Shown: positions 22,301 to 49,986, counted from the first letter of the stretch. The stretch: 64,000 nucleotides of DNA from Paramoeba atlantica (GCA_977017575.1 CDRNVI010000009.1:496001-560000); one strand, 5' to 3'. Program-made: numbers and translations. The notes: a model not told the origin generated them from the letters alone.

Positions 22301-22725
22301 TAGCCGAACAGCATCCATGTAAAGCACGCCGTATCCGCTCGGGACCTGATCTCGCCATCATGTGGCCACACATGGGGGAAGTGCTCTATGACTTCACGGT
22401 GGTGCACACCTGTTGCAACAGTTACGCGAAACAGACCAGTTCAGCACTCATACAACAAGCGATCGATCGAAAAATCAAGAAATATGTCTCCGAAAAGGGT
22501 GTCGATAGTGAATACTTCCGTTGTCTGGCCACCTCAGACTGTGGCCTTCCACACAATGACACCAAGGCACTTTTGAAGGCAATAGCGCAGCGCGCAAAAA
22601 TGAACTACGACAATGCACGACAGGGATTTCAACTTGAGATTGAAAAGATGTCCGCATACACGGTGGTATCTCAACTACGTGAGTACATTCCGAAGGATAA
22701 CTGGATAGGTGGACTTCGCTTCTAG
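19365..22725 (+). pseudogene. CRE element (CRE-G): long RT-RLE ORF; Tudor-like N-terminus separated by a 22-nt insertion (19767-19788)
   Basis: ORF 19987-22725 has all RT and RLE motifs (YQDD). Removing the 22 nt joins ORF 19641 in frame (KGTECVIEWGF...KGTVV...VSY). An uninterrupted copy of the junction (CGTAATAGAAT) is at about 14300-14313. Confidence 0.85.
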
Positions 22726-23049: not shown

Positions 23050-26000
23050 AATAGTTTGTGGGGATTTGAACGCACCTTTGCTAACCCGAAAGGCTGGTAG
23101 TGCAACACAAAACGAGCCAAGAGGCTGAGACAGTTCTTAAATTCACTAGGAGCCAAATCCACGCACGAAGGATGTTGCGCACGTAGAAAATGGACTTACC
23201 GCTTCCCTAGATCCAAAAAATACCCAGAAGGTTTTACCAAACAACTTGATCACATTATTGTCAACCGTCGTTTTTTCTCTTCCATCCGAGCACAGAAATC
23301 AACTATCGCCCCGGTTCTCTCACGACACTGTGCTCTTTCTGCAGTATTTAATTTCCGATGGAAAGCGCAAGAGAAGACTGTGCAACCTCCTTTTTGGAGA
23401 GCATTAAAGAATGATAATGTTAAAAGCAATTTTGTAGCAAATGTGAAGCGATCTCTAAAACAAGCTCCCAAGAGAAATCGTTCTGAGAATGAAACTACTG
23501 AGGAAACTTTGCCCGATCTTGATAACTCAAAGAAAATAACGTGGGATAAATTGTCCAAGGCAATAGAACGTTCCTCCTTGTCCCTTCCTAAAAGACACTC
23601 CAAAAATACAGAAATGAACTTCTACTTCGAGACCGTAGTTCAAAATTTGAGCTTGACACACTTGATGAAAGTTGTGAATAATAAAACGGAATTCCTCCGC
23701 CTATCCAAGGAGCACGTAAGCCGCGTAGAACATTGTATAGTAACTGAATGTGAGAACTTAGAAAAAGAACTGCAAACCATTCCTACGTCTGCGTATAGAA
23801 CTATACGGAATATAGTCGGAGAAAATAGGCTTGAATTCACATTATTCGGAGGGTCAGTAAACGATAGCCTTAAACTTGTCCGCGAACATTTCAGCGAAAC
23901 AGGAAGAGCCGACACAAAAACCAATGAACCCATAAATTTTTCTCCTGCCCCCAAACGCTTGGAAAAGATTGACGGCTGTAGATTTCGTACAGATGAGATA
24001 ATCTCCGCACTGAATAAACTTAAAACAGGTAAAGCTCCCGGGGATGACAACATACCGGTGGAGGCCCTCAGGGCTATAGCTGATGACAGTGAACTGCTAG
24101 CCATAATTCTTGGTATCATGAACGACGTCCTTGATACTGGGCGTGCGGACGAATCATGGAAATCTATAATGCAAGTCCCTCTGCCGAAGAAAGGAAATCT
24201 AAAGTTGCTAGCCAATTGGCGCCCCATCTGCCTTGTCAATCACATTGCAAAAGTATTGAACCGAATGATCCTCGATCGAATACAACCTGCCGTAGAAAAT
24301 TCTTTGCGATGCAATCAATTCGGTTTTCGGCCAAATCGTTCAACTGCAGGAGCTCAAGCGACTTTTATGGAAATAGCGACAAAAGCCAAGAGGGGCTCGG
24401 GGGTGTACGCATGCTTCATCGACTTTAAACAAGCCTTTCCCTCAGTATCTTTCGCTGCAATTGAGGCCACTCTCCTAGCGTTTGACATACCTATCAATCT
24501 TTCGAATGCCATCATGTCGATATACAAGAACCTACGATCCCATGTTCGCACCCCTTATGGAAAGACTGAAGAATTTTCTCTCACACAAGGCACTCTACAA
24601 GGAGATGTACTAGCGCCATACCTGTTCATCATGGTTTTAGATCGCATACTAGTTGAAGCTATAGACAGGCATAAGCTAGGACTTGTTACGCACTCTTCGG
24701 GCACCAGAAGTCGGGGACTAAAAGAACTGCGGGTCTCCGATATCAACTATGCAGATGACATTGTGTTATTCGCATCCTCTAAAAATGAGCTAAAACTAAT
24801 GATCAACAATATATTTTTATCCTCAGCAAAGGCGAATCTTCAGATCAATGTTGGGCCACACAAAACTGCATGGATGATCCTAGGAAAGTTGCAAGATGAT
24901 GGTGAACCGTTGACCATTGAAGGCTTAGGTGAGATTCCTAAGGTGGAATCATATAGATATCTCGGAAGCCCCCAAAATACGGAGGATAAATGCACCTCTC
25001 CACAAGAGCGATTGAGGCTAGGATGGGGTGCAATGCACAAACTGAGATCTCTATGGGCAGCTCCTATTTCTTCAAAGTGTAAATTCCACATATTTAAAAC
25101 TTTAATCCAATCGGTGGTATACTATAATCCGGGAACTTGGAACATTACTCAAGATGAGCTTCACTCCGTCCAGGTTCAGATTAATCGAATGCGAAGAGTT
25201 GTTTTCGGTGTAAAGAATACGAAGGACATCCACCTTAGAGAAACCTCTTTATATCCAACCGACTTAAAACCAGCGACGGTGGTCCAGACACAACGCGCTT
25301 CTCTCATAGGGCACTTGATACGGCATTCTCAACCGTTTCTTACGGCTGCAATGTGGCGGACGAATGACGAAACTTCAAAACCTTCCTTGTCTGAAAGATG
25401 CGCAGCTGAACTACACTCTAATGTTTCCGAAATACTTCGATTGGGCCAAAGTCGATCTGATTGGCGCAAGCTGGTGGAAAAACTTCAGAAAGAGCTGGAA
25501 CCACGTCCTTCATACATAAAAGTATCTTCAACGTCTTGGGATAAACGCTATCAAACGTCAATCGCTCACCACAGTGGGTATAAAGAGCTACAATTCATCG
25601 AAGAAGGAAAAACGGCGTTTCCCATTAGAGAGAACGAAACACATATTTACACTGACGGATCGCTTATCTTTAAAAAGAATCAACAACTCAAGGGATGCGG
25701 TATGGTAATCTTGCGAGGACGCGAGCGCATACAATTTAGAGGAATGAAACCACCTCCCGAATATTCCAGCTCAATTCAATCGATCGAATCATATGCTGCA
25801 ATTGAGGCCACAGAAGAGGCAAAGGCGTATGAGGGAGATGATATCTTACACACAGATTCGGAGTACCTATGGGAATTCTTTCACGAAATAGTTCATAAAT
25901 ATAGGCTCATTGGGTATCAATCTTTCGAAAACCATAAAACCATGGAATTGCTGAGAGACGCTTATTTTGATATTAAGACGAACAGAAATTTCTATTGCGT

Positions 26001-26640
26001 AAAAGTAAAATCCCGTAACGAAAACCCATGCAACGACACAGCCGACTCCATGGCGAAAGAGGCATGTGAACTAGCAAAACGTGAAGTCTCAGTTAAGTAT
26101 TTCGGGGAAGTACTGATGCTGGAAAGTAAAAGAAAGACAGGTCTGAATCAGGGACCCCGCTTAACTAAGACCCAATGTAGGCGACAAGGTTTCAAAATAG
26201 AACAATCTCAAACAATGGAAACAACGACCGTAAAACCCCCAGCTACAAAATCTAAAATACGCGGAAACCGTAGCAAGTCCAATGAAAACGATAATCAGGA
26301 AACTAGTGATCAAAATACAGTCAAAAGATCTAGGAATTCACCGCGCAACATGACTTCAACTGTATTAAACACAAAAAAGCATAAAAATAAAGATTCTGTC
26401 CCCGAGCCTTCACGGACAGTCAGCCCAAATACAATTATATTAGAAAAAGCGCGTTCGAATCATTCGCAAAAGAAGCGATTAAAAGATACAGGAGAGGAAG
26501 ATACCCAAGTGACAAAAGGCGAAAAACACAACGAAAGTCGACAGAAGACTACGGAAATCAATAAGACAACGAAGACATTGTCAAGTTCGCGATCAACTAC
26601 GGGCAATAAGAAAGTAAACGTGACAGAGCATGAAAAGTGA
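23050..26640 (+). mobile_element. APE-RT-RNase H non-LTR retrotransposon (ingi/L1Tc- or RTE-like), 5'-truncated, frameshift in APE near 23115
   Basis: Upstream manual translation gives IVCGDLNA, WTY and LDHIIV; the ORF has KAPGDD, NWRPICL, QFGFR, FIDFKQAF, QGDVLAP, YADD and RNase H motifs YTDGS, E, HTDS and NDTAD. Confidence 0.9.
23380..26640 (+). CDS. RT-RNase H polyprotein (APE C-terminal part continues in frame upstream)
   Basis: 1086-codon ORF with RT and RNase H motifs and a low-complexity basic tail. Confidence 0.88.
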   Translation: MQPPFWRALKNDNVKSNFVANVKRSLKQAPKRNRSENETTEETLPDLDNSKKITWDKLSKAIERSSLSLPKRHSKNTEMNFYFETVVQNLSLTHLMKVVNNKTEFLRLSKEHVSRVEHCIVTECENLEKELQTIPTSAYRTIRNIVGENRLEFTLFGGSVNDSLKLVREHFSETGRADTKTNEPINFSPAPKRLEKIDGCRFRTDEIISALNKLKTGKAPGDDNIPVEALRAIADDSELLAIILGIMNDVLDTGRADESWKSIMQVPLPKKGNLKLLANWRPICLVNHIAKVLNRMILDRIQPAVENSLRCNQFGFRPNRSTAGAQATFMEIATKAKRGSGVYACFIDFKQAFPSVSFAAIEATLLAFDIPINLSNAIMSIYKNLRSHVRTPYGKTEEFSLTQGTLQGDVLAPYLFIMVLDRILVEAIDRHKLGLVTHSSGTRSRGLKELRVSDINYADDIVLFASSKNELKLMINNIFLSSAKANLQINVGPHKTAWMILGKLQDDGEPLTIEGLGEIPKVESYRYLGSPQNTEDKCTSPQERLRLGWGAMHKLRSLWAAPISSKCKFHIFKTLIQSVVYYNPGTWNITQDELHSVQVQINRMRRVVFGVKNTKDIHLRETSLYPTDLKPATVVQTQRASLIGHLIRHSQPFLTAAMWRTNDETSKPSLSERCAAELHSNVSEILRLGQSRSDWRKLVEKLQKELEPRPSYIKVSSTSWDKRYQTSIAHHSGYKELQFIEEGKTAFPIRENETHIYTDGSLIFKKNQQLKGCGMVILRGRERIQFRGMKPPPEYSSSIQSIESYAAIEATEEAKAYEGDDILHTDSEYLWEFFHEIVHKYRLIGYQSFENHKTMELLRDAYFDIKTNRNFYCVKVKSRNENPCNDTADSMAKEACELAKREVSVKYFGEVLMLESKRKTGLNQGPRLTKTQCRRQGFKIEQSQTMETTTVKPPATKSKIRGNRSKSNENDNQETSDQNTVKRSRNSPRNMTSTVLNTKKHKNKDSVPEPSRTVSPNTIILEKARSNHSQKKRLKDTGEEDTQVTKGEKHNESRQKTTEINKTTKTLSSSRSTTGNKKVNVTEHEK

Positions 26641-27677: not shown

Positions 27678-28976
27678 TTATAGTCTTCGCGTGGTATTTT
27701 GAGTTCCGAGTGCAAGTGCCGTCGCTTCGCTGGGCCCCGCGTATCTCAAAAGTGTTGCCACCTGCTTGTGATGAGAGAGCCTCATGACTTGTTCGAGGGA
27801 CTGGTGCCCCGTAGCTACGTGGTGCATTAGACTGGTGATGGCTCCATGTTTGAGGGAATGGGATGTGTACTGGAGACCCATGTGATGTTTGAGGAAACGG
27901 GAAATACTGGTGGTTGTAAGTGTACTGATTTTCTGGTTCGATTTTATATTCTTCACATGGTTGTAAATAAGGGTCGTACTCGGGCCTTCGATAACAACCA
28001 TGTTGTCCGGTCGAAAAGGCTGCTCTTTGGTAGTCTTGGTTTTCGCACCCCAATTGATAACTATTCTGTTCGGAGTTCTGACCACAAAATCTCGACCCAC
28101 AAGATTGCAAACCTCGCCAACCCGCGAAGCCGTTTTGAACGCTAAATGCATTACAGCAGCCATCTCCTTTGACATGATCGGTGTAAGCCGTTCTATAGCT
28201 TGACGATTCATCGGCGCTGCTTGTCTCCGAGGGATAACCGCCCCACGCCTGACCAATGCCTTCGAATACATTTCTGTCTGAGTTGTAGGTCTGCGCAGTC
28301 GGCGGAGTACCGAAATCAAATGTCGCAGGTATACCAATTTGGTTTGAATGGTGGTATGTATTCGTATGATATACAGGACCACACCCTGGTCCGTGAGCGG
28401 CAATCTGCGGCGCCACATGTCCAAAATCAGGCGTGCCCTCGTATTCCATGTTGAGGTGGCCCATATTCCGCGTATTTCCTCTCTGATTTCCGGATTCGTG
28501 ACCTGCAATACGTTGTTGAGGATAAAGTCGGACGAGGCTGTTTGGATTCCAGACGTTCGCATATTTGTTTCGCTGATCGTACCACCGCATCTTTGGGTGA
28601 CCTGTGATATCGCATTCTTCGTGACTGGAGATTTCTTCCACACTGTATTGTTCACGTTTGTGGTCTTGGGGCGAACGTTTGGCTTCTTGGTCTTCTGCTT
28701 TGGAGCGAGGTTTCCGGTATTTTTCGCTATGGTGTTCGTCTTTGACTTGCTTTTGTATTGTTTCCGAGTTTGAAGTGAAATTTTTGTTTTTATTTTTACT
28801 GACTTGCAATTTTGTACTGAAATTTTTGTTTTTAGTATCTGTTGCTGACTTTGAATTCTGCTTTTCTGGCATGATAATGCTATTTTCACTGGCAAAGGAA
28901 GTTTGTATAGAGACTGATTTTGAACTTTTATATGTTTTGTTTTAAACTGGCTTTGGAGGGGGTGGACTACTGGGAG
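27678..28976 (-). CDS. YR1 tyrosine recombinase, in frame behind the gag TGA
   Basis: ASRVGE, HSLKHG and HHKQVATLLRY; the frame is open from the gag stop (manual translation). Confidence 0.88.
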   Translation of the reverse strand, partial: LPVVHPLQSQFKTKHIKVQNQSLYKLPLPVKIALSCQKSRIQSQQQILKTKISVQNCKSVKIKTKISLQTRKQYKSKSKTNTIAKNTGNLAPKQKTKKPNVRPKTTNVNNTVWKKSPVTKNAISQVTQRCGGTISETNMRTSGIQTASSDFILNNVLQVTNPEIREEIRGIWATSTWNTRARLILDMWRRRLPLTDQGVVLYIIRIHTTIQTKLVYLRHLISVLRRLRRPTTQTEMYSKALVRRGAVIPRRQAAPMNRQAIERLTPIMSKEMAAVMHLAFKTASRVGEVCNLVGRDFVVRTPNRIVINWGAKTKTTKEQPFRPDNMVVIEGPSTTLIYNHVKNIKSNQKISTLTTTSISRFLKHHMGLQYTSHSLKHGAITSLMHHVATGHQSLEQVMRLSHHKQVATLLRYAGPSEATALALGTQNTTRRL

Positions 28977-30287
28977 TCACATTCGGCGGCCAGCGCCCCC
29001 CGCGGAGAAATCCGATGTGGGTGAGTACTGGGTCTTTCTGTTATTGTCCGAGGTGTAATTTGGGCGATAAGGTTCACTTGGCCTGAACCCACGACCTCGA
29101 GTCATACCACGTCCTCTTCCGAAATTTGCACTAGGATAAGTGGCACGACCGTATCCCCCACGTCGCGCAACTACTTTTCGCTGGTAGTTGACACTGTGTT
29201 CTATGCCATTCCCGATCACATCCGCCGGGTCTTTGTTCACCTCGTAGATCATTCGAAGATATCGTGGATCGGCTCCGCGATAAACACCCTGCTGCATGCG
29301 AAGATCGTCCAACGCTCTTTGCCCTGTTTGAACTTGTGCCACATTCTCTGGGTCAATTCCACCTCTTGCTTTAACGTCGTCTACCCAATGCTGCATTACA
29401 TCCCACATTGGTTGCAAATTTGGCGGTAAAGGATTTGGAAGTGCCAGGGCGGTTCGAATACGCAAAAGAAGAAAATCAACCCCGAACTCGCTATCCGTCG
29501 CAATGTATTTGTTCCACGTTCGGACATCGCGTACTTTAAATTCGTCGGCTTCTGGAATTGTTTCATCAGCATTTGTTTCACAAGGTTCCAATCGATCCGG
29601 CATAGCTGGTTCCGCTTTCACAATCTCGATTCTCGTGTAATTGAGTTTGGGATTAGGAAGGTGGTAGTTTCCCACATTATAGCTAATAACGACAGTTTTC
29701 TGCTCTTCAAATTCACTTTCTTCTATCGGAATACCGCGCCATGTTGTTGCTTCGCTTGGAGAACTTGTGGCCGCAAACCAAGTTACTTCTACCTCCAAGT
29801 CATATCGTGCAATCTTGTCCAAGATCTCCTGCACCTTAGAAGAAAGATTTTCTGGCTTGATGACAGGTAAGCTTGCGTACAACGCATTGGTAGCACTGTC
29901 CACGCAACAACGAAAAGTATTTGTCATGTCTTGGCGATCTTTCCGAACTGAGAAGGGAAAAGTTGAATGTGGCACTGCTTGTGTAGAGGGAGGTTCCGCC
30001 GACGAGGAACGAGACTGAAAAGCCTTCATTTCGTCGCGCACTATCCCTTGTAACTCTTTTCTCAACACTTCCTGCACATCTTGTCGGATGGTTCGGCGCA
30101 CATCTTCTTGAACAATCGCCATTCGCGATGTTAAATTTTCTAGCGATTGGTCAAGACGACTTACTCTGGTGGGTATATCACTGGTGCATTCCAACGAGTC
30201 CACACTTTCTACAGGATCGTCCCGACCTTGAGTTTGAAAAGCCACGGGAGCTTCTTCCTCGCGTGAGCGCGCCCGTGTAGATACCAT
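28977..30287 (-). CDS. YR1 Gag-like protein (MVSTRARS...), RG-rich C-terminus
   Basis: First ORF of the element, ATG 43 nt behind the SL exon, homologous to the gags of YR2 and YR3. Confidence 0.82.
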   Translation of the reverse strand: MVSTRARSREEEAPVAFQTQGRDDPVESVDSLECTSDIPTRVSRLDQSLENLTSRMAIVQEDVRRTIRQDVQEVLRKELQGIVRDEMKAFQSRSSSAEPPSTQAVPHSTFPFSVRKDRQDMTNTFRCCVDSATNALYASLPVIKPENLSSKVQEILDKIARYDLEVEVTWFAATSSPSEATTWRGIPIEESEFEEQKTVVISYNVGNYHLPNPKLNYTRIEIVKAEPAMPDRLEPCETNADETIPEADEFKVRDVRTWNKYIATDSEFGVDFLLLRIRTALALPNPLPPNLQPMWDVMQHWVDDVKARGGIDPENVAQVQTGQRALDDLRMQQGVYRGADPRYLRMIYEVNKDPADVIGNGIEHSVNYQRKVVARRGGYGRATYPSANFGRGRGMTRGRGFRPSEPYRPNYTSDNNRKTQYSPTSDFSAGGAGRRM

Positions 30288-31413: not shown

Positions 31414-31464
31414 ATGCCTACAACCCGTTCTCAGGCGGCCGCAGAGGTCGCGATGCGGCAAGAA
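31414..31464 (+). pseudogene. Displaced first 17 codons of the YR3 gag (MPTTRSQAAAEVAMRQE)
   Basis: Joins in frame to CAG ATG AGT at 36591 when YR2 is removed; the N-terminus resembles the other gag starts (MVSTRARS, MVQTRSKA). Confidence 0.75.
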
Positions 31465-31655
31465 TAAAACTCTTGGAAATGTAATTGGGCCTTTGTACTA
31501 GTGTCAGGAATTAAGGAAAACATGAAGGACTTATTCGTGAACTACGGCATGATATTATTTGCAAAATTAGACAGACTTTTCTTATTTGTATTTCGCACGA
31601 ATAAAAGTGGCCTTCTTGTTCTCTCTGTTCTATCTCTCTGTTCTCTCTGTTCTAT

Positions 31656-31691
31656 CTTTAACGATAAAGATACAGTTTCTGTACCTTGTTG
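31656..31691 (+). ncRNA. Retroposed spliced-leader exon joined at the AG acceptor of repeat A
   Basis: SL followed by ACAGACTTTT (31692) versus genomic TTAG followed by ACAGACTTTT at 31570/31571 and 36258/36259. Confidence 0.9.
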
Positions 31692-31733
31692 ACAGACTTT
31701 TCTTATTTGTATTTCGCACGAATAAAAGTGGAA

Positions 31734-32984
31734 ATGGTGCAAACACGTTCGAAAGCACATGATTCTCAAGAGGACTATGCCACGGATAGCGACACTGAAC
31801 AAACGTGCGGCACATATTACCCAAAACCGAATTCGACACAAATCACTTCGAGCCACTCACTTCCAGATGTTTTCCTCACCGAACAGGTCAATACAGTCGT
31901 GGAAAAGCTAACGCGTGCACTTGAAAAAGTCACTTCGAAGGTTGATGCGATGGAGGAGCGTGAACGGAAAAGGCGAAAAGAGACAAACATTACGGATCCA
32001 TCTGCACCGCGACACGGACAAGCACCTGGGAACACCTTATGTCCTCTTCCAACCTCCTTGAAAAAGAGATGCAGTGTGCCAGAAGAGCTCAACAAGCAAT
32101 ACGCCGCACAAAGGGTTATGCTCCCAGAGGAAGTAGAGAGTCAAGTCAATGAGGTTATGGCGACCGTGCAACAGAATGACATAGAAGTCGAAGTAACCTG
32201 GTTCCCCGTTGGAGGTAGGAAAGAGACAGGGACAACATGGCGAGGTACGGTAGAGGACAATGGAGACGAGGAAAATCCTATCATTGTTTCCTACCCGTGG
32301 GGTAACTATCCTCTGCCTAATAGCAACGTGTGTTATACGCGCATCGTGATATCAGCAAGTGAGCCAAAGATGCCAGGCAAATTGCCCGAATCGGACGATG
32401 AAACTGCACCATCAGAAGAGACGAACGACAGTTTCAACCTCCGGGACGTTACAACATGGAACACATACATTACCCAGGGGCCACTAGGGATTGAAATATT
32501 GAAACAGCGGTTGCGAACGGCGCTGGATCTCCCTTCTCGAATGTCACCACAGCTACAAGCCCTTTGGGATATCTTGTGTGCTTGGATAGACGATAGCGCA
32601 GAAAGAGGGGGCGTGAACAGCGACGCCGTCAATCACAAAAACGTCGGCCAAAGCACAGTTGACCAGATACGCATTCTGCAAGGAATATATCGAGGAGCAG
32701 ATGCTCGATATATACGCTCACAATACGTTACCCAGAAAGACCCACAGGACCGACTTGGTAATGTAATTGAGCAAAGCGTAACCTACAATCAAGCAACCAC
32801 GTATACGAGCCGTGGATCCCAGCGGACCCGCTATACGCCTCGCATGCCGATACGAGGGCGAGTATATGCAAATCGGACCCCCATAAATCGGACTGGCATA
32901 CTAGAACATGGCATTACGCGTCAAGCGACCATCGCACCACGCGCTCCGGATTTTCGTGGACGGGGGATCGGTCCACAGCACTGA
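31734..32984 (+). CDS. YR2 Gag-like protein
   Basis: ATG 42 nt after the SL; coiled-coil-like region and conserved EVEVTW..WRG..VSY..LP domain. Confidence 0.85.
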   Translation: MVQTRSKAHDSQEDYATDSDTEQTCGTYYPKPNSTQITSSHSLPDVFLTEQVNTVVEKLTRALEKVTSKVDAMEERERKRRKETNITDPSAPRHGQAPGNTLCPLPTSLKKRCSVPEELNKQYAAQRVMLPEEVESQVNEVMATVQQNDIEVEVTWFPVGGRKETGTTWRGTVEDNGDEENPIIVSYPWGNYPLPNSNVCYTRIVISASEPKMPGKLPESDDETAPSEETNDSFNLRDVTTWNTYITQGPLGIEILKQRLRTALDLPSRMSPQLQALWDILCAWIDDSAERGGVNSDAVNHKNVGQSTVDQIRILQGIYRGADARYIRSQYVTQKDPQDRLGNVIEQSVTYNQATTYTSRGSQRTRYTPRMPIRGRVYANRTPINRTGILEHGITRQATIAPRAPDFRGRGIGPQH

Positions 32985-33005
32985 CTCTCAAGAGTCCTCC
33001 CCCCG
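32948..33005 (+). promoter_or_regulatory. Putative recoding cassette: G_GAT_TTT slippery site, 6-nt spacer, GC stem enclosing the gag stop
   Basis: Equivalent sites at 29007-29013 (-), 37718-37724 (+), 43446-43452 (-) and 49670-49676 (-), with covarying stems. Confidence 0.8.
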
Positions 33006-35902
33006 AGGAAAAGCAAGTACACACCAATAAAAAGGAAGTTAAAAGATCAAATACAGAATCCAAAATACAAAAATATCAATATGAAGCAGAACACGAAAAC
33101 GAAAATAAAAATACAAAGTCAAATTACAATAAACAAAGCAAGTACAAAACGGAAAAACATTTATCAGCCAGTATTACGGACCAGCACCTCTATCCGACCC
33201 GTTTGCAAGACACAAACGGAAAAACTACCGTCCCACACGTGCAAATTTCGAATCAGCAATATCGATACCCACAGATCCACTACCCGACGTATCATCACCA
33301 AGGCTCATCGTCAGACCAATGGATCCCACATCAAAATATCGAATATCACCCAGCCACCGAGACACAACATACCCCAGGAACAGACCCCCTATTACGTTAT
33401 GTCCAATTTCCTCAACGTGACATCTCCTTCGGTAATGGAAGCGTTGAAGCCTATGTGGGCGGAGACAACATGGACTACCAGGTGCCGTCTGCTATGCCAT
33501 ATGCGGAGTTTGGGAATACCCATTACGGATACGGGGGTCATACGATTTATTATGGGACGCCCGATATCTACACAGACCAAGCTCACGTACCTAAAACACC
33601 TTATAGCAATTTTGAAGCGACTGGAACTCTCTACGCGGCAATCCCAAATGTACACGAAAGTGTTGATCCGCAAGGGGGCATCTATCCCACAGCACCAGGC
33701 GGCCCCAGTAACCAAGAAGGATTTGCAGAAAACGCTTATGAGCATGCCGGAAGACAGAGCAGTGGTTGCACTCCTTGCTTTCAAAACAGCTTCCCGGGCT
33801 GGGGAAATCGCCAAGCTACGCAGGAAGGATGTTATAGTGCTCCGCCCGTCACGTATTATCATCAACTGGGGTACGAAATCGAAAACCTCCAAGGCACAAC
33901 CATTCCGCCCCGACAATCTAGTGGTAATCGAGGGAGAAACCACCAGGCGTATCTACAACTACCTGAAGAGGTTAAGCCCGCATCAGCGGATCAGCAACTG
34001 TACAACACAAGACCTCACTCGCACGCTCAAGAAAGGACTGGGGAGCAATTACAGTTCCCACTCCCTCAAGCATGGATCAGTCCAATACCTGATGAGGCAA
34101 GTCGCCAAAGGCTCCATAACTATGCCGCAAGTCATGCACCTGGCCAAACACAAACAATTGTCAACCCTTATGCGCTATGCAGGTATGAACGAGACTACGG
34201 CACTGGCACTGGGAAGTCAGAAGCTGACCAAACTCCTATGAAATCTAAGACGCTCGAATACCAAGGTGGGTGGATCGGAATCACGGAGAAAATGCAGTAC
34301 GGTATTCGACGTACGATAACCAGAATGTTTCGCCGAACATGCCGCCCTACGGCGAAGCAGATGCAGACACTACCTATCCACGCGAAACATGTACCGCCGC
34401 TGTACCTGGAACGTTTAACTTCTTTGATGAATGCGCCTACGCGAGAACGCTTCACACAAGTGTGGGAACTACTTATTAACCCAACGAACGATGCACCAAT
34501 CACCACTATACCTCTCGTATCTCCCACATGTCTGAGCAAGAAAGACGTATGCATCTTGATCGATGTTGATGTCCTGGAAAGAGTAAATGACCAAACATTG
34601 CACAAATATCCGACCAAAGGAATCGTACACCCTTTTACGAACGTCGAAGAACGCGACACTGGATTACGTAGGCGATTTATTTGTTGGCCTAAAGAACATA
34701 ATGCTGCTATTGAGGATGCATATAAAGCTGACGTACCAATAGGACACCCCACGATGTATATGCCCGCCGTACAACAACAGTATGCAGTGAAGAGAGACCT
34801 CAGTTGTGGTTTTTACCAAGTAGAATTGCCGGTTGAAGCTCGGGCACATTATCGTTTCGCATATAACGGCGGCCTATACCAACTGAAGCGCATGCCCATG
34901 GGACATGCGTGCGCGCCAGAGATTCAACATATAGCAACCAGTGTCTTAGCTGGAGACGGGAAGTATACCTCATTGGCACATCGATTCAAGGGACAGTTAG
35001 ATATCTACCTGGACGGGATCCGCTTCAGTGGCACAGCAGAGCAAAGCCATGTATACGAACAGTGGCTGGAGGAACGGGCTAAAGATATTGGAATGACCTT
35101 CAAACCGAGTGATTCTTACATAGGTACGAACTACAATTTCCTGGGAATAGAATATGACCATAGCCAACAAAAATGCCGAATAGGAGAGCGTTTTCTCAAC
35201 AAGATCCCAAAACAATTACCCGAGTTGGCGCAACTTCACGTATACGAATCCTTAATTGCTCGCCTCATTTATGCATCCGCGGTATCAGGGATCTTATTAC
35301 CAAAGTACTATTGGGTGATAAAATATATTAGAAGACAGCTCTCAAAATTAAATAGAGGGGTGATGCAGGACACAGATACAATTGTGCCATCCGCTAACAT
35401 ATACCAGCAAATGAACGAATGGGTATACCAAATACATAAGAATCCATGGCGCGCTTGCGCAGACGTCAGTACCCCAGTAACAGTAATGTACACCGACGCG
35501 TCGAAAGCTGGATGGGGCGCAGTATTATTCCCTTCAATAGGCCCAATGACGGCCACAGGCAGCTTATGGGAAGAACCCTATGAAATAAACAAAGCAGAAA
35601 TTTTAGCGGTCGAGCGGGCCTTACATACGTTTGAGGCGTATTGGCACGAGAACAAACTTCTCCACGTATACGTAGATAACACTAGTGTGCAAGCCGCCAT
35701 GACACGTAGTTGGGCGGATTCAGAGGGATTGGCCGAGGTATTATATCGAATACTAACCTATTTACGCGAGATGAATATTATACATTCAACATCATACGTT
35801 AATACAAAACAAAACCTCGCAGATCCGTGGAGTCGCGGAAAATTTGATACTTCGCATGGGGTGATACTTGCGAAGGGGTGGAGCGGGCGAGCCCCGTCGT
35901 AA
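32948..35902 (+). CDS. YR2 Pol in the -1 frame: extension overlapping the YR ORF, then RT and RNase H
   Basis: Frame verified open from 32948 to 33203 and through ORF 33203-35902; KRDLSCGFYQ, MPMGH, YLDG, TDAS, E, DN and NLAD motifs. Confidence 0.88.
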   Translation, partial: GFSWTGDRSTALTLKSPPPEEKQVHTNKKEVKRSNTESKIQKYQYEAEHENENKNTKSNYNKQSKYKTEKHLSASITDQHLYPTRLQDTNGKTTVPHVQISNQQYRYPQIHYPTYHHQGSSSDQWIPHQNIEYHPATETQHTPGTDPLLRYVQFPQRDISFGNGSVEAYVGGDNMDYQVPSAMPYAEFGNTHYGYGGHTIYYGTPDIYTDQAHVPKTPYSNFEATGTLYAAIPNVHESVDPQGGIYPTAPGGPSNQEGFAENAYEHAGRQSSGCTPCFQNSFPGWGNRQATQEGCYSAPPVTYYHQLGYEIENLQGTTIPPRQSSGNRGRNHQAYLQLPEEVKPASADQQLYNTRPHSHAQERTGEQLQFPLPQAWISPIPDEASRQRLHNYAASHAPGQTQTIVNPYALCRYERDYGTGTGKSEADQTPMKSKTLEYQGGWIGITEKMQYGIRRTITRMFRRTCRPTAKQMQTLPIHAKHVPPLYLERLTSLMNAPTRERFTQVWELLINPTNDAPITTIPLVSPTCLSKKDVCILIDVDVLERVNDQTLHKYPTKGIVHPFTNVEERDTGLRRRFICWPKEHNAAIEDAYKADVPIGHPTMYMPAVQQQYAVKRDLSCGFYQVELPVEARAHYRFAYNGGLYQLKRMPMGHACAPEIQHIATSVLAGDGKYTSLAHRFKGQLDIYLDGIRFSGTAEQSHVYEQWLEERAKDIGMTFKPSDSYIGTNYNFLGIEYDHSQQKCRIGERFLNKIPKQLPELAQLHVYESLIARLIYASAVSGILLPKYYWVIKYIRRQLSKLNRGVMQDTDTIVPSANIYQQMNEWVYQIHKNPWRACADVSTPVTVMYTDASKAGWGAVLFPSIGPMTATGSLWEEPYEINKAEILAVERALHTFEAYWHENKLLHVYVDNTSVQAAMTRSWADSEGLAEVLYRILTYLREMNIIHSTSYVNTKQNLADPWSRGKFDTSHGVILAKGWSGRAPS
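32985..34241 (+). CDS. YR2 tyrosine recombinase, in frame behind the gag TGA (first ATG 33081)
   Basis: ASRAGE, HSLKHG and KHKQLSTLMRY catalytic motifs. Confidence 0.9.
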   Translation, partial: LSRVLPPRKSKYTPIKRKLKDQIQNPKYKNINMKQNTKTKIKIQSQITINKASTKRKNIYQPVLRTSTSIRPVCKTQTEKLPSHTCKFRISNIDTHRSTTRRIITKAHRQTNGSHIKISNITQPPRHNIPQEQTPYYVMSNFLNVTSPSVMEALKPMWAETTWTTRCRLLCHMRSLGIPITDTGVIRFIMGRPISTQTKLTYLKHLIAILKRLELSTRQSQMYTKVLIRKGASIPQHQAAPVTKKDLQKTLMSMPEDRAVVALLAFKTASRAGEIAKLRRKDVIVLRPSRIIINWGTKSKTSKAQPFRPDNLVVIEGETTRRIYNYLKRLSPHQRISNCTTQDLTRTLKKGLGSNYSSHSLKHGSVQYLMRQVAKGSITMPQVMHLAKHKQLSTLMRYAGMNETTALALGSQKLTKLL

Positions 35903-36590
35903 GTAACAGCAAGTAAAGATCTAGCAAGTACATAAGATAAATATTTAGATGCACTTTTGAGACCATACAAAATTACGTTCTACTACTAGAATAAGCCGAA
36001 TGGTAAACCGCGACGGAATATTAGACGATACACACATAATAGATGACAACAATACAGCTACTAAGTTGTTTATTAAACAATGGATTAATTAATATGTGTT
36101 ACCCAGAGACGGCTTGTCAAGGAGGATTCAACGTGTTGTCAAGGCCCAATTATAAAACTCTTGGAAATGTAATTGGGCCTTTGTACTAGTGTCAGGAATT
36201 AAGGAAAACATGAAGGACTTATTCGTGAACTACGGCATGATATTATTTGCAAAATTAGACAGACTTTTCTTATTTGTATTTCGCACGAATAAAAGTGGCC
36301 CACCCACCTCCCCGCTCCGCGCGGGCGAGCCCCGTCGTAAGTAACAGCAAGTAAAGATCTAGCAAGTACATAAGATAAATATTTAGATGCACTTTTGAGA
36401 CCATACAAAATTACGTTCTACTACTAGAATAAGCCGAATGGTAAACCGCGACGGAATATTAGACGATACACACATAATAGATGACAACAATACAGCTACT
36501 AAGTTGTTTATTAAACAATGGATTAATTAATATGTGTTACCCAGAGACGGCTTGTCAAGGAGGATTCAACGTGTTGTCAAGGCCCAATTA

Positions 36591-39500
36591 CAGATGAGTT
36601 CTCATCCAGAGGAACAAGTGGACGAGCCATTACCAATCTATCCGTCTTCAAACAAGCGCAGAGCGACGCGTCAACGCTCGCGTTCTCTTCCTCGTCTATC
36701 TAATCCTTTTACCCGAGTTGTAGAGGAGGAAATCCCGGAAAAAAGTGTTCCAGACCCAAGAGTGCACTCAGCGAACCAAATGGTGGAAGTGTTTGGTGGT
36801 CTGTCGAAGCAGTTGGAGGCGCTCCTTAAGAACCAGCAGGAGCAGCAGTCTCTTTGGGAGCGGCGTAGCACCCAAGAAAGTGAACGGTTTGAAACGCTTT
36901 TAAGTAATATACGGATCGGATCTTCGCTCCATGGCGGCGAACGGGCACATATGGCATCAGCTCCCGACACACCGGGAGATCAACCTTTGACATTGGACAA
37001 AGTCCGGGATGAGGTACGGAAGATAAAAGATCTATTGGATGATTATGTTGTGGAATTGAAGGTAACCTGGTATTGGACAGGAGAAACACCAGTGTGTGCA
37101 CAAACATGGAGAGGCGTGGCTCACACGACGGGAGATGAAACCGATTCAATCATTGTAACTTACCCTCACGGAACGTCGGAGCTCCCTCTGCCTGGTGTGA
37201 CTTACACCAAGATCGAGGTTGTGGGTAAAACACCAATAGACAGCGTTACTCAGGACAGCGTCGAAGAGAAAGAATTTGTTCTCCACGATGTCAGTACTTG
37301 GGAGTCCTTGTTGGTGCCTCAGAAGGATTATGATGTGTTGGAGAATCGTCTCCGTGTGGGATTACGTATGCCGACTACATTAACTCCGGAATTGCAATAC
37401 GTGTGGGATCTCTTCCATCAATGGGTACTCTTGACGCAGGGCAAGGGTGGGCTCAATCTTGCAGATAAGAAGCATTTAAAGATGGGCCAAATGCTACTGG
37501 ACCGTTTGCGGATAAAGCAAGCCATTCTCCGAGGAGCAGACCCGCAATACGTGGAAACTCATTATGGTGTTCAACAGGACCCAACGGATCAGTTGGGGAA
37601 CATGCTCGTTAGCAGCATAAATTACAACAAGACTCGAGGCAGGGCTGGCGGTCACCGAGGACGACGAGCATATTACGGTCGAGGAACACAGGAGCAGAAT
37701 TCCAAGGTACCGCGATCGGATTTCGCGCTGCGGGGGTCTGGCGGGAAGTGACTCGGAGAAGTCCGCCCCCGGGCAAAAAGCCAGTCTATACAAAGAATAA
37801 AATTAAAGGAAAATTTAGGGAGCAAAAAGAGCAGGGAGAATTTTTTAAGTCAAAGCAAGAAGCAAGAGAATGTACAGCGGATAATAAAAGCAAGTTTAAA
37901 GCGTATAACGCAGGATCAAGTCAAGTCAAGTCAAAGGCAAGGCAAGTCAACACATCTGCAGTCGGAGGAAACATACAGCCCTGTTTCGCACCCAAAACGG
38001 ACCCCGCAAACCGTTTTGAGGGACTCCCCCGTCACACAACCAACATGCGCGTTTTTGAGAGACGTGCGATATGTCCTCGCGGAGATGGGAATCACAAGAA
38101 CAGAAATGCAAAAACATCTTCTAAATTTATGGGCCCGAACTACGTGGATGACCCGCGCACGATTACTCCGATAAATGCGAGCCGCTCATCTTTCGTTCGA
38201 CGACGACAACGTCGTCGCATTCATTTCCGGACTAAGGATCACCGTTCAAACCAAGCACACTTACCTGAAACACTTAATTTCCGTACTTGCGAAGGCTCAA
38301 AAGCCTACAACACATGCGGAACTTCTCGCCAAAACTTTCGCCAGGACCGGGGCAGCGATACCGACCCGACAAGCACTCCCAATTTCCAAAGATCAGATCC
38401 GGCTGTTAATTCCCCTAATGCCAAACGATATGAAGCTGGTAGTGCTCGTCGCTTACAAAACGGCTTCCAGAGCGGGCGAAGTTTCAAAAATGCGGCGCAG
38501 AGATGTTATTACCCTTCGGCGGGACCGGGTTGTTATCCATTGGGGCCAACATACGAAGACTACCCGAGCGCAGCCGTTTCGGCCGGACTCTTTCACGGTG
38601 ATCGAGGGCGAATTTACGGAGGAAATTTACAAACTCTTGAAGAATCACCAATTAACCCAACGTTTCAGTCGAGTTACTACGGAGGGAGTGACCAATTTTC
38701 TGCGGGACCATTTGGGCAAGGGATACTCATCCCACAGCCTCAAACATGGGGCAGTGCGTGCCATGATGGAAGAAGTGGCACACAACAACCTCACTATGGA
38801 GGATGTAATGCGGCTATCAAAGCACAAACAGATGGCAACGTTGCTCCGGTATTCCGGGGTGACGGAAACTGCTGCCTTGGCGCTCGGCACACAGCGGAGC
38901 ACCAGGACACTCTGACGTCCAAGGTTCCACTTGGGTATGGTATTAAGAGGCCTAGCATAGAGAGATTAGGCGTACATTGGGAACCTGCCATGCAGGACGC
39001 TCTTTGGAACCCAAAGTTGGTGTGGTCCCGCTTGCACCGGAAGACAATCCGCCCTACCTCAGATATGATGGTGAAGGTGCCTTTGCATGCGAAGTACGTA
39101 TCCCCTCTGTATTTGGACTGTGTGCGCGAATTAATGAATCCCCAAACGCAGCACAGATTCGATTATTTATGGAAAGAAATTTGTAATCCATCAGTGCCCT
39201 AAATTATTCCGCGCCCAAGTCCAGTGAGTCCGTCCGAATTGACTCACAATGACTTGAAACAATTGCTTGAGGCGGACATAATTGAACGAGTCGAGGATAC
39301 TTTGGCGAATCCTACTAAGGCATGGGTAATCCCATTCACCACTTTGGAGGACAGAGAGGGAGCTTTTAGACGCCGATTTATTACGTGGACAAAGATCCAT
39401 AACGCTGCAATCGAAACTTCTTACGTCGCACATGTTCCATTAAAGCAGCCAGTTGAATATGTATCGCAAGTACATGAGGATGGTGCGGTTCTCCGTGATT

Positions 39501-40830: not shown

Positions 40831-43800
40831 CTGTCGTTTCATCGCAGCTAAGCAGGAGGTATTGTCTATATACAAGTCGATACACGTGTCGCGATTAAAG
40901 TGATGAACGAAGTGCTCCAAAGCAAGACGAACGGCCCTCGCCTCCGCTTTGTTGACTTCGTACTCGTATTCCTCGGGCCATTTATCTCCAGCACACAGCA
41001 TTTGCCCATAATCTAAGTATAGAACGGCGCCCCATCCCTTGGACGAGGCATCTGTAAATAACGTGTGATTGTGCGGAACGGCATCTGGGTGCGGCAAAGG
41101 GGTTACAGGAATATTACTCGTCAACTTTTTATTCCATCTGGTCAATGAGATTCCGACATAAGCAGGCAACATTGCGCGTTTAATTCCCAAATCTGGATTC
41201 CGATTTAATGCATTTATGCGTCGTCGAACAATTTTCAATATCATGTGATACTCCGGTAACGGTTCTCCCAAAATTCCGGATGCATATATCATTCTACCTA
41301 CAGCTGATTCTAAATCGTCGTATGTTATCGTACGGAAACTATGTTTTCTCAACCGTGCTACAATTTTCGGCACAAGCGCTACTTTCTTCTCGCGATGTAA
41401 ATATGACACTCCATTGAAAATATAATTTTGTTGGGGAGGAGTCCCGTGGTCTTTAAATCTTGCATTTATGAATGATGACCTGCGATCTACGAATTCACCG
41501 AACTTACTCGCCGTCTGGAAATCCCCGGCAAAACGAATTCCATCAATGTAAACATCGGCGCCTTTTACCGGAAATCTATCTTCTTTTGAACAGTATTTCG
41601 GGTCGCCAGCCAAAACTGCGGTAATCGAATGCATCAACTCTGGAGCACATCGATGTCCCATGGGCATAACTGTTAGTTCATACAAGTGGCCGTCACCTGA
41701 TCGAAAACGAAATTTTGCTCTCGAGTCAATTGGAATTCCTACTTGATAAAAACTGCATGCGAGATCCCTTTTAATTCCGTAATCTTGCTTCACCTGGTGT
41801 AAATAGTAGGCAGCATGTCGTAAAGGAATGGAAGGCACGTACGATTCCCGAATTCGAGCGTTGTCTGCTCTCGTCCATGCGATGAATCTTCTTCTTTCAC
41901 AGATACCATCGTCACCGTCAGGCTCCACTACAGTGAATGGAATGACCCATTGATTTGTCGGGCGTTTTGTCTCTTGTTCGTGGGACACTTTCGATACAAA
42001 GCCTGCGTCAATTAACAACTGTACATCGCTTAATGGGACAGAGAAAAATTGAGGAGATTCTTTTTCTGGTTCTGGTAACAGATCAAACATTTCACGTCGT
42101 AGGTACTCGCAGCGCTGACGCGTTTCCTCATTCATTAAACTCATGACTCGTTTGAAATTAATTTGTGGAATGTCAAATTTCACATGTAGCGGTAAATGAA
42201 AGTTCTCTTTCGTCGCTAGCTTGGTAGCTCTTTTAGTTCGCACGATAGTATGCTTGATTTTCTCCTGCGGCATGTCCCGCAGGAACTCGCGAAATAAAAA
42301 CCCTGATTCTATAGCGTTTTCAGGAGGGAGGTCGCTTTTGCGGTTCCCAACGCCAAAGCTGTTGTCACTGGGTCGCTATTGTATCGGAGGAGTGATTCGA
42401 TCTCTTGATGCTTCGCCAAATTTTTCAAATCTTCCAATGTTAACTTTCCCTGTGCTACCTCTCGAAATAGCATTGTAATTGCCCCCCTCTTGGCTGAATG
42501 AGTCCCGAACCCCGCACCTAGAATGTCGCGAATCTTGCTGTCCATCTTTCGCACTGTTGTTCGACACAGGACGTCGTAAGACTTCAGAATACGTAGGTGA
42601 TCCGCTATTTCGAGAGTTCCCTGTCCCGATATGACTGTATACATTGATTTTTTCCACGGGTTGCATCTTGAGGTCTTTGTGCCTCGACCCCACCATATTA
42701 TGATCCGGTTGGAGTTTACTTCCACAAAATTTTCCTTTCTCAGGGAAGCCGTTTCGCTCCATCTCGATGCACTCTTCCAACATATTAGCATTGTGACACT
42801 TTCGTTCGCCTCCAGGTTTGATCTTAGACGACAAAGAAGGTGTGGTGTCAGCGGCGTCATTTGGTGCATCGGCTCTCCCGCTCCCTCTGCTTGCAGGGCT
42901 CGAACAAAGAACTTGAGTGGATTTATGTTGGCACCCGCTAGGTTGAATAAGGTCATGAGATTTCTGCCGTACGTTAACCTGGTCTGCACTGATATTGGTA
43001 ACATTTGCAAGAACGTTACCGCGTGGATTGGATTTCGTTCGATTCTTCGCCAGGTACAGAATCCCTGAAACCTTTCCCATAGACGCGCACGAGTTGACCA
43101 AGTCCTGCTTGCCCACATCGACGCTATGGCGTCCAGCGCTATCCGTACTTCGTGCGTTACCAAAGTCACTCCCATGAGATGCTGTGTCAATTTCCTTCTC
43201 GCTTGGTTTGATTGTTGCAAACTCAAAACTCCTCCGTATACTTGCGTCGAGTTCACCAACCTTCCGTTCAAGTTTACTGAGCTTGTCACATGTTCCCCTG
43301 AACAATTCTTGAAACGTTTGGTTACTAGCGAGGTTTCCGCCCCAAAGCGCCCCCGTTTCCGGGGGGCCGGGACACTGGCAATTTTCGGGTGGTCGTCCTA
43401 TAACGACTTTCCGCTCTGATGAGCGGTGCCAGACACCCGCGACCGAAAATCCGGCTGCTGGCGTCGATGCGGACACTGGCGTAGGATATGATCGGGGGAA
43501 CGACAATTGAAACACAATAAACGATTACGGTAAGGTGGTCCACCGGGAAATATGTTGGCTTGCATCGACGGTCCCGGTGGTGGTGGTGGTGGTGGTGGGA
43601 AACCTTGGAACGGTGGTGGGTAATAGGGCGCAGAAAAGTTCGCAGCGTAATACTTCTTCTTGGCTTTATCCCGTTCAGTCAATTGGTCTGCTACGTGCTG
43701 GTAAAATTTGTCATTAGAACGTTCATCCTTGCTAATTTTACGGTGTACATCTTCAACGTCAATTTTTCGGGCGCGCCAGTAAGCGTCTCGCAAGCTTTGT

Positions 43801-49000: not shown

Positions 49001-49986
49001 TCGTTAGATTGCTTCGCAATTGCGCGAGAAGTAGAGGCGTTATCGGTTTCATTGAATCGGCTCCGCAGCCCCCTCGGATAACAATGTTTTGCAACGAAAT
49101 TTTATCGCATTCGTGTTCATTTGTAGACCATTGAATATGGCCATCAAGTTTCGGGCGTATGTGAGTTTCGTTGTGACCGCTATTGTCAACGTTTCCAAGT
49201 ATGCTACGGCGGACAAGGGAGTCACCTCTAGGCTTTTCCTGCAACAAAACTCGTTTAGTTGGTGCCACAAGCGTCCCCTCGTGGCCCACGTGCTTGTTGC
49301 CCACATTCCTCTCATAGTTTGAAGGGAGGTTTCTATGGCTGCGTCTGACTTTTTTGTCGCGGTCAGCCTCCACAAAAGATTGTCTTGTGCGGTTTTCCTG
49401 TCGTTTACAACGTTTGTTATCACCCTCCTTGACGTTATTTGGTCCTGAGGGGGCGCAGTATCCGCAATTCTAACACTTTGTCGAATCTTCCTCTTCTTCG
49501 CTTTTTGCGAGGTAGTTTGACATGAGTTCACTGATCCGGACGATAAAGTCTCGGAAGCTGGAGTACTTTTCACCCTTCGTTTCTTTCGAAGAGTACGAGC
49601 TGTTACGAGTGGGGGTCCCTAGTAGGACCTCTTACTGCCTTGTATGGCAGAGCCGTCCACCCGTTTTTCGAAATCCCCCGTCTTTGCGCTGGGACAATCT
49701 TTTTGCAAGTGTCCAATTTGATGACAAATAAAGCACACACGCTTTTTCCTTCCGACGCTACCTGGTCCCGCAAAAATTATCGAAGTAAAGTGAAGAAAAT
49801 ATTGTCCTAAGAATCTTCTTCTAAGAAATATTATATGAAATAACGAAACAAAAGTACATTACACGTAAAGTTTATGCGTAAAAGTGCAGTATATGCTAAA
49901 GATGTATTCAAGATTGCACTGGTTGGTGCGTGCATGAAACACGTTAACCACTGCACACTTCCTAAAATTCTTTTCGTAAACTCATA
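46023..49986 (-). mobile_element. YR5 with complete split direct repeats; gag deleted except the knuckle (49619-49768), YR frameshifted near 49055, RT/RNase H ORF 46662-48161 open
   Basis: A1 49769-49986 equals A2 46234-46451 (218 bp); B1 46452-46645 equals B2 46023-46216 (194 bp, 1 mismatch seen); manual translation gives CFICHQIGHLQKDC. Confidence 0.92.

Follow-up and report, generated by a model that had tools for sequence, protein, structure and literature searches.

A predicted gag-end -1 ribosomal frameshift in VIPER-like tyrosine recombinase retrotransposons of a diplonemid-type euglenozoan

We analysed a 64,000-nt stretch of Paramoeba atlantica DNA (GCA_977017575.1 CDRNVI010000009.1:496001-560000), here called the window, with coordinates counted from its first nucleotide. 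It holds five related tyrosine recombinase (YR) retrotransposons, A to E, which a preliminary description of the same DNA had listed as YR1 to YR5 in that order. That description proposed that the reverse transcriptase (RT) and RNase H (RH) of these elements are reached by -1 ribosomal frameshifting near the end of gag. Its sequence-level predictions hold, also in elements outside the window, and we consider it likely that a programmed -1 frameshift at the gag end yields a Gag-linker-RT/RH fusion in these VIPER-like elements of a diplonemid-type euglenozoan. The reading is carried by a slippery heptamer that stays in phase across lineages, a GC-rich structure directly downstream, and a -1 frame that remains open across the whole YR gene.

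Searches with the three proteins of element B (tblastn) located the five elements between ~27 and 50 kb, with A, D and E on the - strand and B and C on the + strand. Identity between families was 33-34% for gag, 32-48% for YR and 23-46% for RT/RH. The gene order was gag - YR - RT/RH with the third open reading frame (ORF3) overlapping ORF2, in agreement with published ORF tables (PMC6681497 suppl. 3), and in every element examined the RT lay in the -1 frame relative to gag. The recombinase of B, at 33081-34238, matched Pfam Phage_integrase (6.7e-8) and is not of the DDE integrase type; a homologous YR was present in 5/5 window elements. Within the 899-residue ORF of B (33203-35899), RVT_1 and RT_RNaseH were confined to the last 380 residues, and Pfam detected no protease, methyltransferase or any domain beyond those two. 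The parts of B that bear on the predicted frameshift are as follows.

31734-32984, + strand: gag ORF of B from first ATG to TGA, frame 0, 29-35% identical to gag of the other elements.
32948-32954, + strand: slippery heptamer G_GAT_TTT in gag phase, a known viral shift site (PMC5009743).
32961-33005, + strand: candidate stimulatory structure, enclosing the gag stop and a hairpin GACUC/GAGUC.
32961-32966 and 33000-33005, + strand: arms of the stem S1, CGGGGG x CCCCCG.
32982-32984, + strand: gag stop TGA, next base C, within the candidate stimulatory structure.
32985-34241, + strand: frame 0 beyond the gag stop, dual-coded overlap; an open run with the YR ATG at 33081 and the stop at 34239-34241.
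32955-34384, + strand: -1 frame linker of ~475 codons, stop-free, first ATG not before +522, sequence unconserved.
34385-35902, + strand: RT/RNase H in the -1 frame (Pfam RVT_1 and RT_RNaseH; alignment; 1118 representative proteins at E<=1e-30).

An RT/RH search returned 14 relatives on contigs that came mostly from one ENA assembly. This assembly contained copies of window parts at 98-100% identity as well as the satellite of the window, so we treat it as the same organism. Seven further elements were added to the five of the window: four from the ENA assembly (L003, L004, L006 and L009), two from other metagenomes (L011 and L012) and one from Diplonema papillatum (L010). The closest named RT/RH relatives were hypothetical proteins of D. 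papillatum, and a word-based protein search returned no named kinetoplastid protein. On the basis of these relatives and of a spliced-leader (SL) sequence containing ACAGTTTCTGTAC, we place the host among diplonemid-type Euglenozoa.

All five window elements carried xxG GAT TT[TC] in the gag frame (Asp-Phe), with the end of the heptamer 24-48 nt before the gag stop. Reading of the phase thus bore out the preliminary description on this point, and its statement that G_GAU_UUU is an established viral slippery heptamer has published backing: natural shift sites on record include this heptamer along with the G_GA and G_GU classes (PMC5009743). The first G of the heptamer lies at 29013(-) in A, 32948(+) in B, 37718(+) in C, 43452(-) in D and 49676(-) in E. 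GGATTT[TC] occurs at 22 sites on both strands of the 64 kb. Within gag bodies, in-phase slippery heptamers were found at 0.0028 per codon, or 0.057 expected per 20-codon tail; one was present in 10/10 scored gag tails, 15-57 nt ahead of the gag stop. The loci of the ENA assembly that retain the gag end carried G_GAT_TTC (L003), G_GTT_TTC (L004), G_GAT_TTT (L006) and G_GTT_TTT (L009), each in phase and followed by the same type of stem. The base preceding GAT or GTT was G in 9/9 elements of this organism, and the amino acid of that preceding codon varied (S, P, S, P, G, R, P, Q, P).

Five heptamer types were seen across lineages: G_GAU_UUY in seven elements, G_GUU_UUY in L004 and L009, G_GGA_AAC in D. 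papillatum, L011, L012 and Bodo, A_AAA_AAA in Crithidia, and A_AAA_AAC in Trypanosoma cruzi. Because the encoded dipeptide differs among them (DF, VF, GN, KK, KN), a motif of the gag protein does not explain the site.

We folded the region downstream of the heptamer in the nine elements of this organism (A-E, L003m, L004, L006 and L009). S1 started 5-6 nt after the heptamer in 9/9, and the predicted structures ranged from -15 to -44 kcal/mol. S1 was part of the minimum free energy (MFE) fold in 7/9 elements, C, L003m and L004 among them. In A, the G-run and C-run paired in a shifted register, the exact S1 costing 2.5 kcal/mol more. The MFE fold of D, E, L006 and L009 was a Y-shaped junction in which S1 forms the outer stem around two inner hairpins, with the gag TAG in the apical loop of the second. 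The stems of this TAG hairpin had four unrelated sequences (GUCGUU/GACGAC, GGUCCU/GGGACC, UUCCC/GGGAA and GCACA/UGUGC). S1 itself covaried at one pair, where D, E, L006 and L009 have both bases exchanged (U-A in place of G-C), and its closing pair varied between C-G, G-C and G.U. Fold z-scores were -2.6 for D and -2.4 for E. The cassettes of the four other window elements are as follows.

28957-29013, - strand: element A; GGATTTC at 29013-29007, S1 GGGGGG/CCCCCT, S2 GCTGGC x GCCAGT downstream.
37718-37771, + strand: element C; GGATTTC at 37718-37724, S1 CGGGGGT/GCCCCCG, S2 CTGGC x GCCAG downstream.
43386-43452, - strand: element D; GGATTTT at 43452-43446, Y-shaped, with S1 CGGGTG/CACCCG around two inner hairpins; the second holds the gag stop TAG in its apical loop.
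49606-49676, - strand: element E (decayed); GGATTTC at 49676-49670, Y-shaped, S1 CGGGTGG/CCACTCG, TAG in a hairpin loop.

A second candidate pairing, S2, joins the 5-6 nt directly after the S1 5' arm with 5-6 nt located 5-8 nt past the S1 3' arm. It crosses an A-rich loop, was present in 6/9 elements, and covaried from CUGGC/GCCAG to CGAGC/GCUCG in L009, with a sixth pair of G-C or A-U. Its downstream motif, GYCAGU, is not tied to one phase of the -1 frame but occurs in all three, and this marks it as an RNA-level rather than a protein feature. In these models, the stimulator is a multi-branched, Y-shaped structure, and S1 and S2 probably form an H-type pseudoknot with a large insertion that carries the gag stop codon. 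Of the preliminary description's account, the listed GC stems after the heptamer stand; its fixed 6-nt spacer becomes one of 5-6 nt, and its plain stem gives way to the branched model.

The -1 frame was open over distances that its composition and coding context do not predict. In B, with positions relative to the slip site, no stop interrupted it between -180 and the end of RT/RH, whose stop is at +2952. One stop was found in C (at +1482), one in D (at +1074) and one in A (at +69), and E had several, in line with the stop counts given in the preliminary description. The +1 frame over the same overlap held 22-37 stops, and the -1 frame within gag held ~22. Synonymous-codon shuffling of the YR frame, keeping protein and codon usage (1000 shuffles, six elements), predicted 11.6-18.3 stops in the -1 frame across the 1.1-1.3 kb YR gene, compared to 0-1 observed. 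The observed count was reached in 0/1000 shuffles for each of the six elements, with the +1 frame as expected. Frequent overlap-frame stops in more intact copies, which had been named in advance as contrary evidence, did not appear: in B, L003m, L006, L011 and L012 no stop interrupted the -1 frame between the slip site and the end of RT/RH, and in both L003 and L006 frame 0 was also open from the gag stop to the YR stop.

The -1 frame opens just ahead of the slip site, and its first ATG comes 327-522 nt after it. Upstream of that ATG the frame was stop-free for 293-485 nt, compared to 3.2-6.6 stops expected, and the stop-free stretch from the gag stop to the first -1 ATG had P 0.001-0.027 in each of five elements. 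Internal initiation therefore does not explain the openness. The start at a conserved 'MN' that had been put forward as an alternative is likewise preceded by conserved RT residues (R..I.R..R, PLHV) upstream of the 'MN' methionine.

The peptide encoded by the overlap showed no conservation beyond background. Identity at YR third positions, which are -1 frame first positions, was ~0.30 in the overlap and ~0.31 in non-overlapping RT, and third codon positions were saturated between families. The ~400-residue overlap-encoded linker that had been predicted corresponds to 350-475 codons; the shuffles support selection for an open frame, and the third-position comparison shows no protein-level constraint on the linker. 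From these sequence comparisons we infer that the overlap-frame peptide is a linker under selection for openness only and not for sequence, as would follow if translation passes into this frame at the slip site and has to continue as far as RT. A conserved domain encoded in the overlap, such as a protease, was rejected, as linker identity did not exceed background and Pfam returned no domain.

Several copies of these elements are in decay. The sole -1 frame stop of A, the TAA at +69, lies in GTT TAA AAC directly past the S2 3' arm (window 29013-28940); A, which is truncated in RT as well, is probably a dead copy, and it has a near-identical relative, L002, that lacks gag. Runs X2 and X3 contained a B copy in which 228 nt at 33217-33446 were replaced by CTA, a 225-nt deletion that kept both overlapping frames, and another B copy lacked 2 nt at each of 33372 and 33390. 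In the X2 copy, gag, YR and the -1 frame all had nonsense changes. Polymorphism among public runs was dropped as a test of selection, the variants being decaying paralogues with nonsense in gag, YR and the -1 frame.

Beyond this organism, L011 and L012 each had an in-phase G_GGA_AAC with the TGA-C gag stop 15-18 nt downstream, and their -1 frame was open for ~2.9 kb, with ~60 stops in the +1 frame. L012 had a 9-bp stem 5 nt past the heptamer, with UGA in the loop. The degenerate L010 of D. papillatum had G_GGA_AAC in phase 18 nt before the gag stop, followed after a 6-nt spacer by a stem, CCCGGGGG/CCCCCGGG, whose loop contains the gag TGA; L010 contributes the gag-end cassette only, its downstream part being too degenerate for a test of the frame corridor. 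An exhaustive profile search with an RT/RH-only profile returned 1118 representative proteins at E<=1e-30, and 270-750 residues preceded the RT domain in 57 of the best 150 of these 1118. A profile search with the full-length alignment gave no match, its words being drawn from the unconserved linker. Long N-terminal extensions (600-750 aa) of some relatives were considered as in-frame Gag-RT fusions, but were of low complexity and without CCHC motifs, and did not give a clear case. Three D. papillatum proteins (KAJ9435842.1, KAJ9436991.1 and KAJ9461657.1) contained YR and RT/RH in one polypeptide of 1190-1630 aa; they could belong to a single-ORF family like Bodo TATE or be gene models that bridge frames by artificial introns.

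A similar arrangement could be followed in published kinetoplastid VIPER copies (PMC6681497 suppl. 10, 60-nt lines). The gag frame of Bodo saltans reads AAG GGA AAC (G_GGA_AAC) 24 nt before TGA, with YR in the gag frame and RT in -1, and the fold was -21.1 kcal/mol (z -2.9). In Crithidia fasciculata, TTC CAA AAA AAA GGG AAG ... TGA (A_AAA_AAA) follows the CCHC knuckle, and a bulged hairpin with UGA in the loop comes next (-24.3 kcal/mol, z -2.2). T. cruzi Dm28c has TCA AAA AAC GGC CGA GGG GCT GCC G ... TGA ATG (A_AAA_AAC) with RT in the -1 frame, a 6-nt spacer and a perfect 10-bp stem, GGGGCUGCCG/CGGCAGCCCC, whose loop contains UGA (-34.9 kcal/mol, z -3.2). No -1 stop from the slip site into RT was seen by eye in B. 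saltans or T. cruzi. ORF3 is reported to begin upstream of the ORF1 end and to span ORF2 in T. cruzi, C. fasciculata and Leptomonas pyrrhocoris (PMC6681497 suppl. 3); the word 'frameshift' in that paper refers to mutations only. By its sequence, the T. cruzi VIPER has what is a textbook frameshift cassette of A_AAA_AAC, 6 nt and a 10-bp stem, and these comparisons support extension of the predicted cassette to the classical VIPER of T. cruzi, Crithidia and Bodo.

We propose that the full-length RNA would be translated from the gag start, with most ribosomes ending at the gag stop to give Gag. A minority would pause with their P and A sites on G_GAU_UUY at the GC-rich structure 5-6 nt downstream, in which S1 would surround one or two hairpins, one of them with the gag stop, and S2 would probably complete an H-type pseudoknot. 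Paused ribosomes would slip back one base and go on in the -1 frame through ~350-475 linker codons that overprint the whole YR gene. RT and RNase H would be reached last, to produce the Gag-linker-RT/RH fusion. The slip, its efficiency and the fusion protein are predictions drawn from the observed heptamers, their conservation and the open-frame statistics.

RT/RNase H could instead be made from its own trans-spliced or internally initiated mRNA, using an ATG inside the -1 ORF, with the heptamer and structure serving some other role. Translation would start at the conserved Met that precedes RT or at the first -1 ATG, which comes 330-520 nt past the gag stop. This lineage normally derives monocistronic mRNAs by SL trans-splicing, the element contains an SL exon copy, and a Met is conserved ~40 residues into the conserved RT N-terminus. 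However, the -1 frame opens just before the slip site and is stop-free well ahead of its first ATG, the conserved R..I.R..R and PLHV residues precede the conserved Met, and the sense strand past the gag stop is A-rich with no polypyrimidine tract. A separate mRNA also leaves unexplained why five different heptamers are all slippery and in phase, and we consider this explanation unlikely. It is hardly credible that the pattern reflects chance or base composition, that is, a T-poor + strand in which long open frames arise unaided and a heptamer that is merely inherited from an ancestor. The AT skew is indeed +0.18 to +0.27 across the element, and the nine elements of this organism are homologous. 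Yet stops are plentiful in the +1 frame of the same DNA (19-37) and in the -1 frame of gag, and 12-18 of them are predicted in the -1 frame when codons are shuffled with the YR protein and codon usage unchanged, so T-poor composition is not the cause of the openness. Nor would it account for a heptamer that persists, or gives way to other slippery ones, despite RT identity of 24-46% between families and saturated third positions.

The structure at the gag stop could also act mainly on termination, with YR made by readthrough or termination-reinitiation and the openness of the -1 ORF due to something else. In every element examined, YR lies in the frame of gag and a single stop separates the two, and frame 0 was open to the YR stop in 10/12 mapped elements (C and the degenerate L004 have an extra early stop). 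D, E, L006, L009, L012, T. cruzi and Crithidia hold the stop within the loop of a hairpin, and an ATG follows 0-2 codons past it in T. cruzi, L003m and L006. Among diplonemid-type and metagenome elements this stop reads TGA-C or TAG-G; kinetoplastid copies have UGA there, with AUG directly after it in T. cruzi. Gag stops were mapped at the following positions.

Window 32982-33081: element B, from gag stop to YR ATG.
L003:4002, L006:4145 and L009:4493: elements of the ENA assembly.
L010:4548: D. papillatum element.
L011:3002 and L012:1392: elements of other metagenomes.

Several of these points lose force on inspection. A ribosome at the stop has already unwound the S1 5' arm, so S1 cannot act on it from downstream. 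The common frame of gag and YR is locked by the need to keep the -1 corridor continuous and is therefore not independent evidence for an effect on termination. The open frame 0 before the first YR ATG was weakly beyond chance (P 0.08-0.68 per element, ~0.05 combined), in a test of little power, as shuffling of -1 frame codons predicts just 0.3-1.6 stops; the position of that ATG also varies, from +3 to +414 nt. As a replacement for frameshifting, an effect on termination accounts for neither the slippery heptamers nor the open -1 corridor and seems quite improbable; it is better seen as an addition. The shared frame and its single stop suggest that YR may be expressed by readthrough or termination-reinitiation at the gag stop. 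We further offer, tentatively and as a doubtful possibility, a three-way recoding hub in which one mRNA would give Gag by termination, Gag-linker-RT/RH by a -1 shift and YR by readthrough or reinitiation, an arrangement that would be ancestral to kinetoplastid and diplonemid VIPER-like elements. The two recoded products of such a hub would have in common 1.1-1.3 kb of fully dual-coded RNA.

Some observations weigh against the frameshift at the gag end. B is the weakest case: its S1 is outside the MFE fold, 0.8 kcal/mol above a competing local hairpin, and no S2 pairing was found in it. Fold z-scores were unremarkable for A, B, C, L003m, L004 and L006, the structure of L011 was weak, and the covariation in S1 represents few independent events, D, E, L006 and L009 being one clade. 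For the kinetoplastid copies, frames were tracked by eye and only the folds were computed, and the Bodo hairpin lies ~28 nt past the heptamer, beyond the usual spacing. An unconserved linker of 350-475 residues is unusual for a Gag-Pol fusion. The one RNA run with the species label yielded only two matching contigs, both on the spliced-leader segment of B, and none on the rest of the element. Euglenozoa are able to cut polycistronic RNA by trans-splicing, which makes a separate RT mRNA mechanistically possible.

Element B is bounded by split direct repeats, a pattern that we checked in this element only. The flanking features of B are as follows.

31459-31612, + strand: 5' split direct repeat A1; its identity to A2 (36147-36300) is 99-100%.
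31653-31691, + strand: spliced-leader exon copy in the 5' region, containing ACAGTTTCTGTAC, with a ~100-fold depth spike.
35883-36152 (B1), 36147-36300 (A2) and 36321-36590 (B2), + strand: 3' split direct repeats, 99-100% identical.

A 41-nt duplicate of the A1 end was present at 31570-31610, 31691-31731 and 36258-36298, and the SL exon copy lies between A1 and its duplicate; the depth spike over this copy was seen in all runs. Elsewhere in the window, RVT_1 was detected in four large ORFs (2297-5056, 8290-12126, 19987-22725 and 23380-26640), one of which also had RNase H. These four ORFs of the left half appear to be non-LTR-type (non-long terminal repeat) retrotransposons, and the region appears to be a transposon graveyard. 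A satellite with an 18-nt period occupies 49991-50731 and 54477-64000, with strong strand asymmetry, GC 35% and AT skew -0.5; it recurs on the ENA-assembly contig at L003:7380-8244 with 91-94% identity, and a 2359-codon 'ORF' at 54490-61569 falls inside it.

The literature on VIPER and TATE tabulates ORF overlaps without a mechanism and leaves open how the overlapping ORFs of YR elements are expressed. The cassette, if it functions as predicted, would explain why ORF3 always starts before the gag end, why the whole YR gene is overprinted and why the frame relation is constant. It would also be a case of -1 frameshifting by a cellular element in Euglenozoa, of which our full-text literature search found no description. 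That search likewise found no paper linking YR retroelements or VIPER to ribosomal frameshifting, with Lorenzi et al. 2006 lying outside its reach; that work reportedly concerns VIPER of T. cruzi. The T. cruzi cassette can be tested directly in its host, for which good genetics and ribosome profiling are available. At 350-475 codons, the corridor offers an unusually clean natural case of selection on frame openness alone and would be useful as a benchmark for methods that detect overlapping genes.

Frameshifting by -1 between gag and pol is a known kind of mechanism; here it is predicted in an element class and lineage for which we found no description of it, and the unusual feature is the long, unconserved, fully overprinted corridor. 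Retroviruses and long terminal repeat retrotransposons use gag-pol -1 frameshifting, for example human T-lymphotropic virus and bovine leukemia virus at A_AAA_AAC, mouse mammary tumor virus and human immunodeficiency virus 1. The present elements resemble them in placing an X_XXY_YYZ-type site close to the gag stop, separated by 5-8 nt from a downstream stem-loop or pseudoknot, and in a Gag-Pol fusion made by a minority of ribosomes, here predicted from sequence. They differ in that a shifted ribosome would cross the whole YR gene, 1.1-1.3 kb, in an alternative frame, in having no protease between Gag and RT, and in the position of the gag stop within the stimulatory structure. Among RNA viruses, G_GAU_UUU is used by pea enation mosaic virus RNA2 and dianthoviruses, and G_GUU_UUU by luteoviruses and cardioviruses (PMC5009743). 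These heptamers are identical to ours, with non-canonical G_GA or G_GU re-pairing in the P site and a zero-frame stop close by, but they serve replicase genes with stimulators that need long-range pairing or a viral protein, and have no evolutionary relation to the present elements.

The nearest system is VIPER, the vestigial interposed retroelement of T. cruzi, with relatives in Crithidia, Leptomonas and Bodo (Ribeiro 2019, PMC6681497), and motif-level similarity together with architecture indicates that the elements described here are VIPER-like YR retrotransposons of the order DIRS. Shared features are the gag - YR - RT/RNase H order, the split direct repeats A1 ... B1-A2-B2 published for VIPER (PMC6681497), the lack of protease, integrase and methyltransferase, and the RT motifs IPF.VVE....G.RRR.I.WP/TK. 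In both, ORF3 starts while ORF1 is still open and extends over the whole of ORF2, gag and YR occupy one frame with RT in -1, and the end of gag carries a slippery heptamer in phase, accompanied by a stem-loop. The present host differs in being a diplonemid-type euglenozoan rather than a kinetoplastid, and the heptamers in its elements are G_GAU_UUY or G_GUU_UUY, not A_AAA_AAC, A_AAA_AAA or G_GGA_AAC. The ORF overlap of VIPER is already on record (PMC6681497 suppl. 3), and overlapping YR and RT/RH ORFs have been described in VIPER, TATE and DIRS1-like elements (PMC6681497, PMC12278014, PMC3266345). TATE, from Leishmania and other trypanosomatids, and DIRS1-like elements are alike as YR retroelements with overlapping YR and pol ORFs. 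In TATE, however, ORF3 overlaps just the final 0.5-0.9 kb of a long ORF2 and stops short of gag (PMC6681497 suppl. 5), so a gag-end frameshift could not serve RT there. DIRS1-like elements differ in possessing a methyltransferase and inverted repeats, and their pol overlaps the non-catalytic part of the YR ORF and leaves the catalytic domain free of overlap (PMC3266345), whereas the predicted corridor of the VIPER-like elements runs across the entire YR gene.

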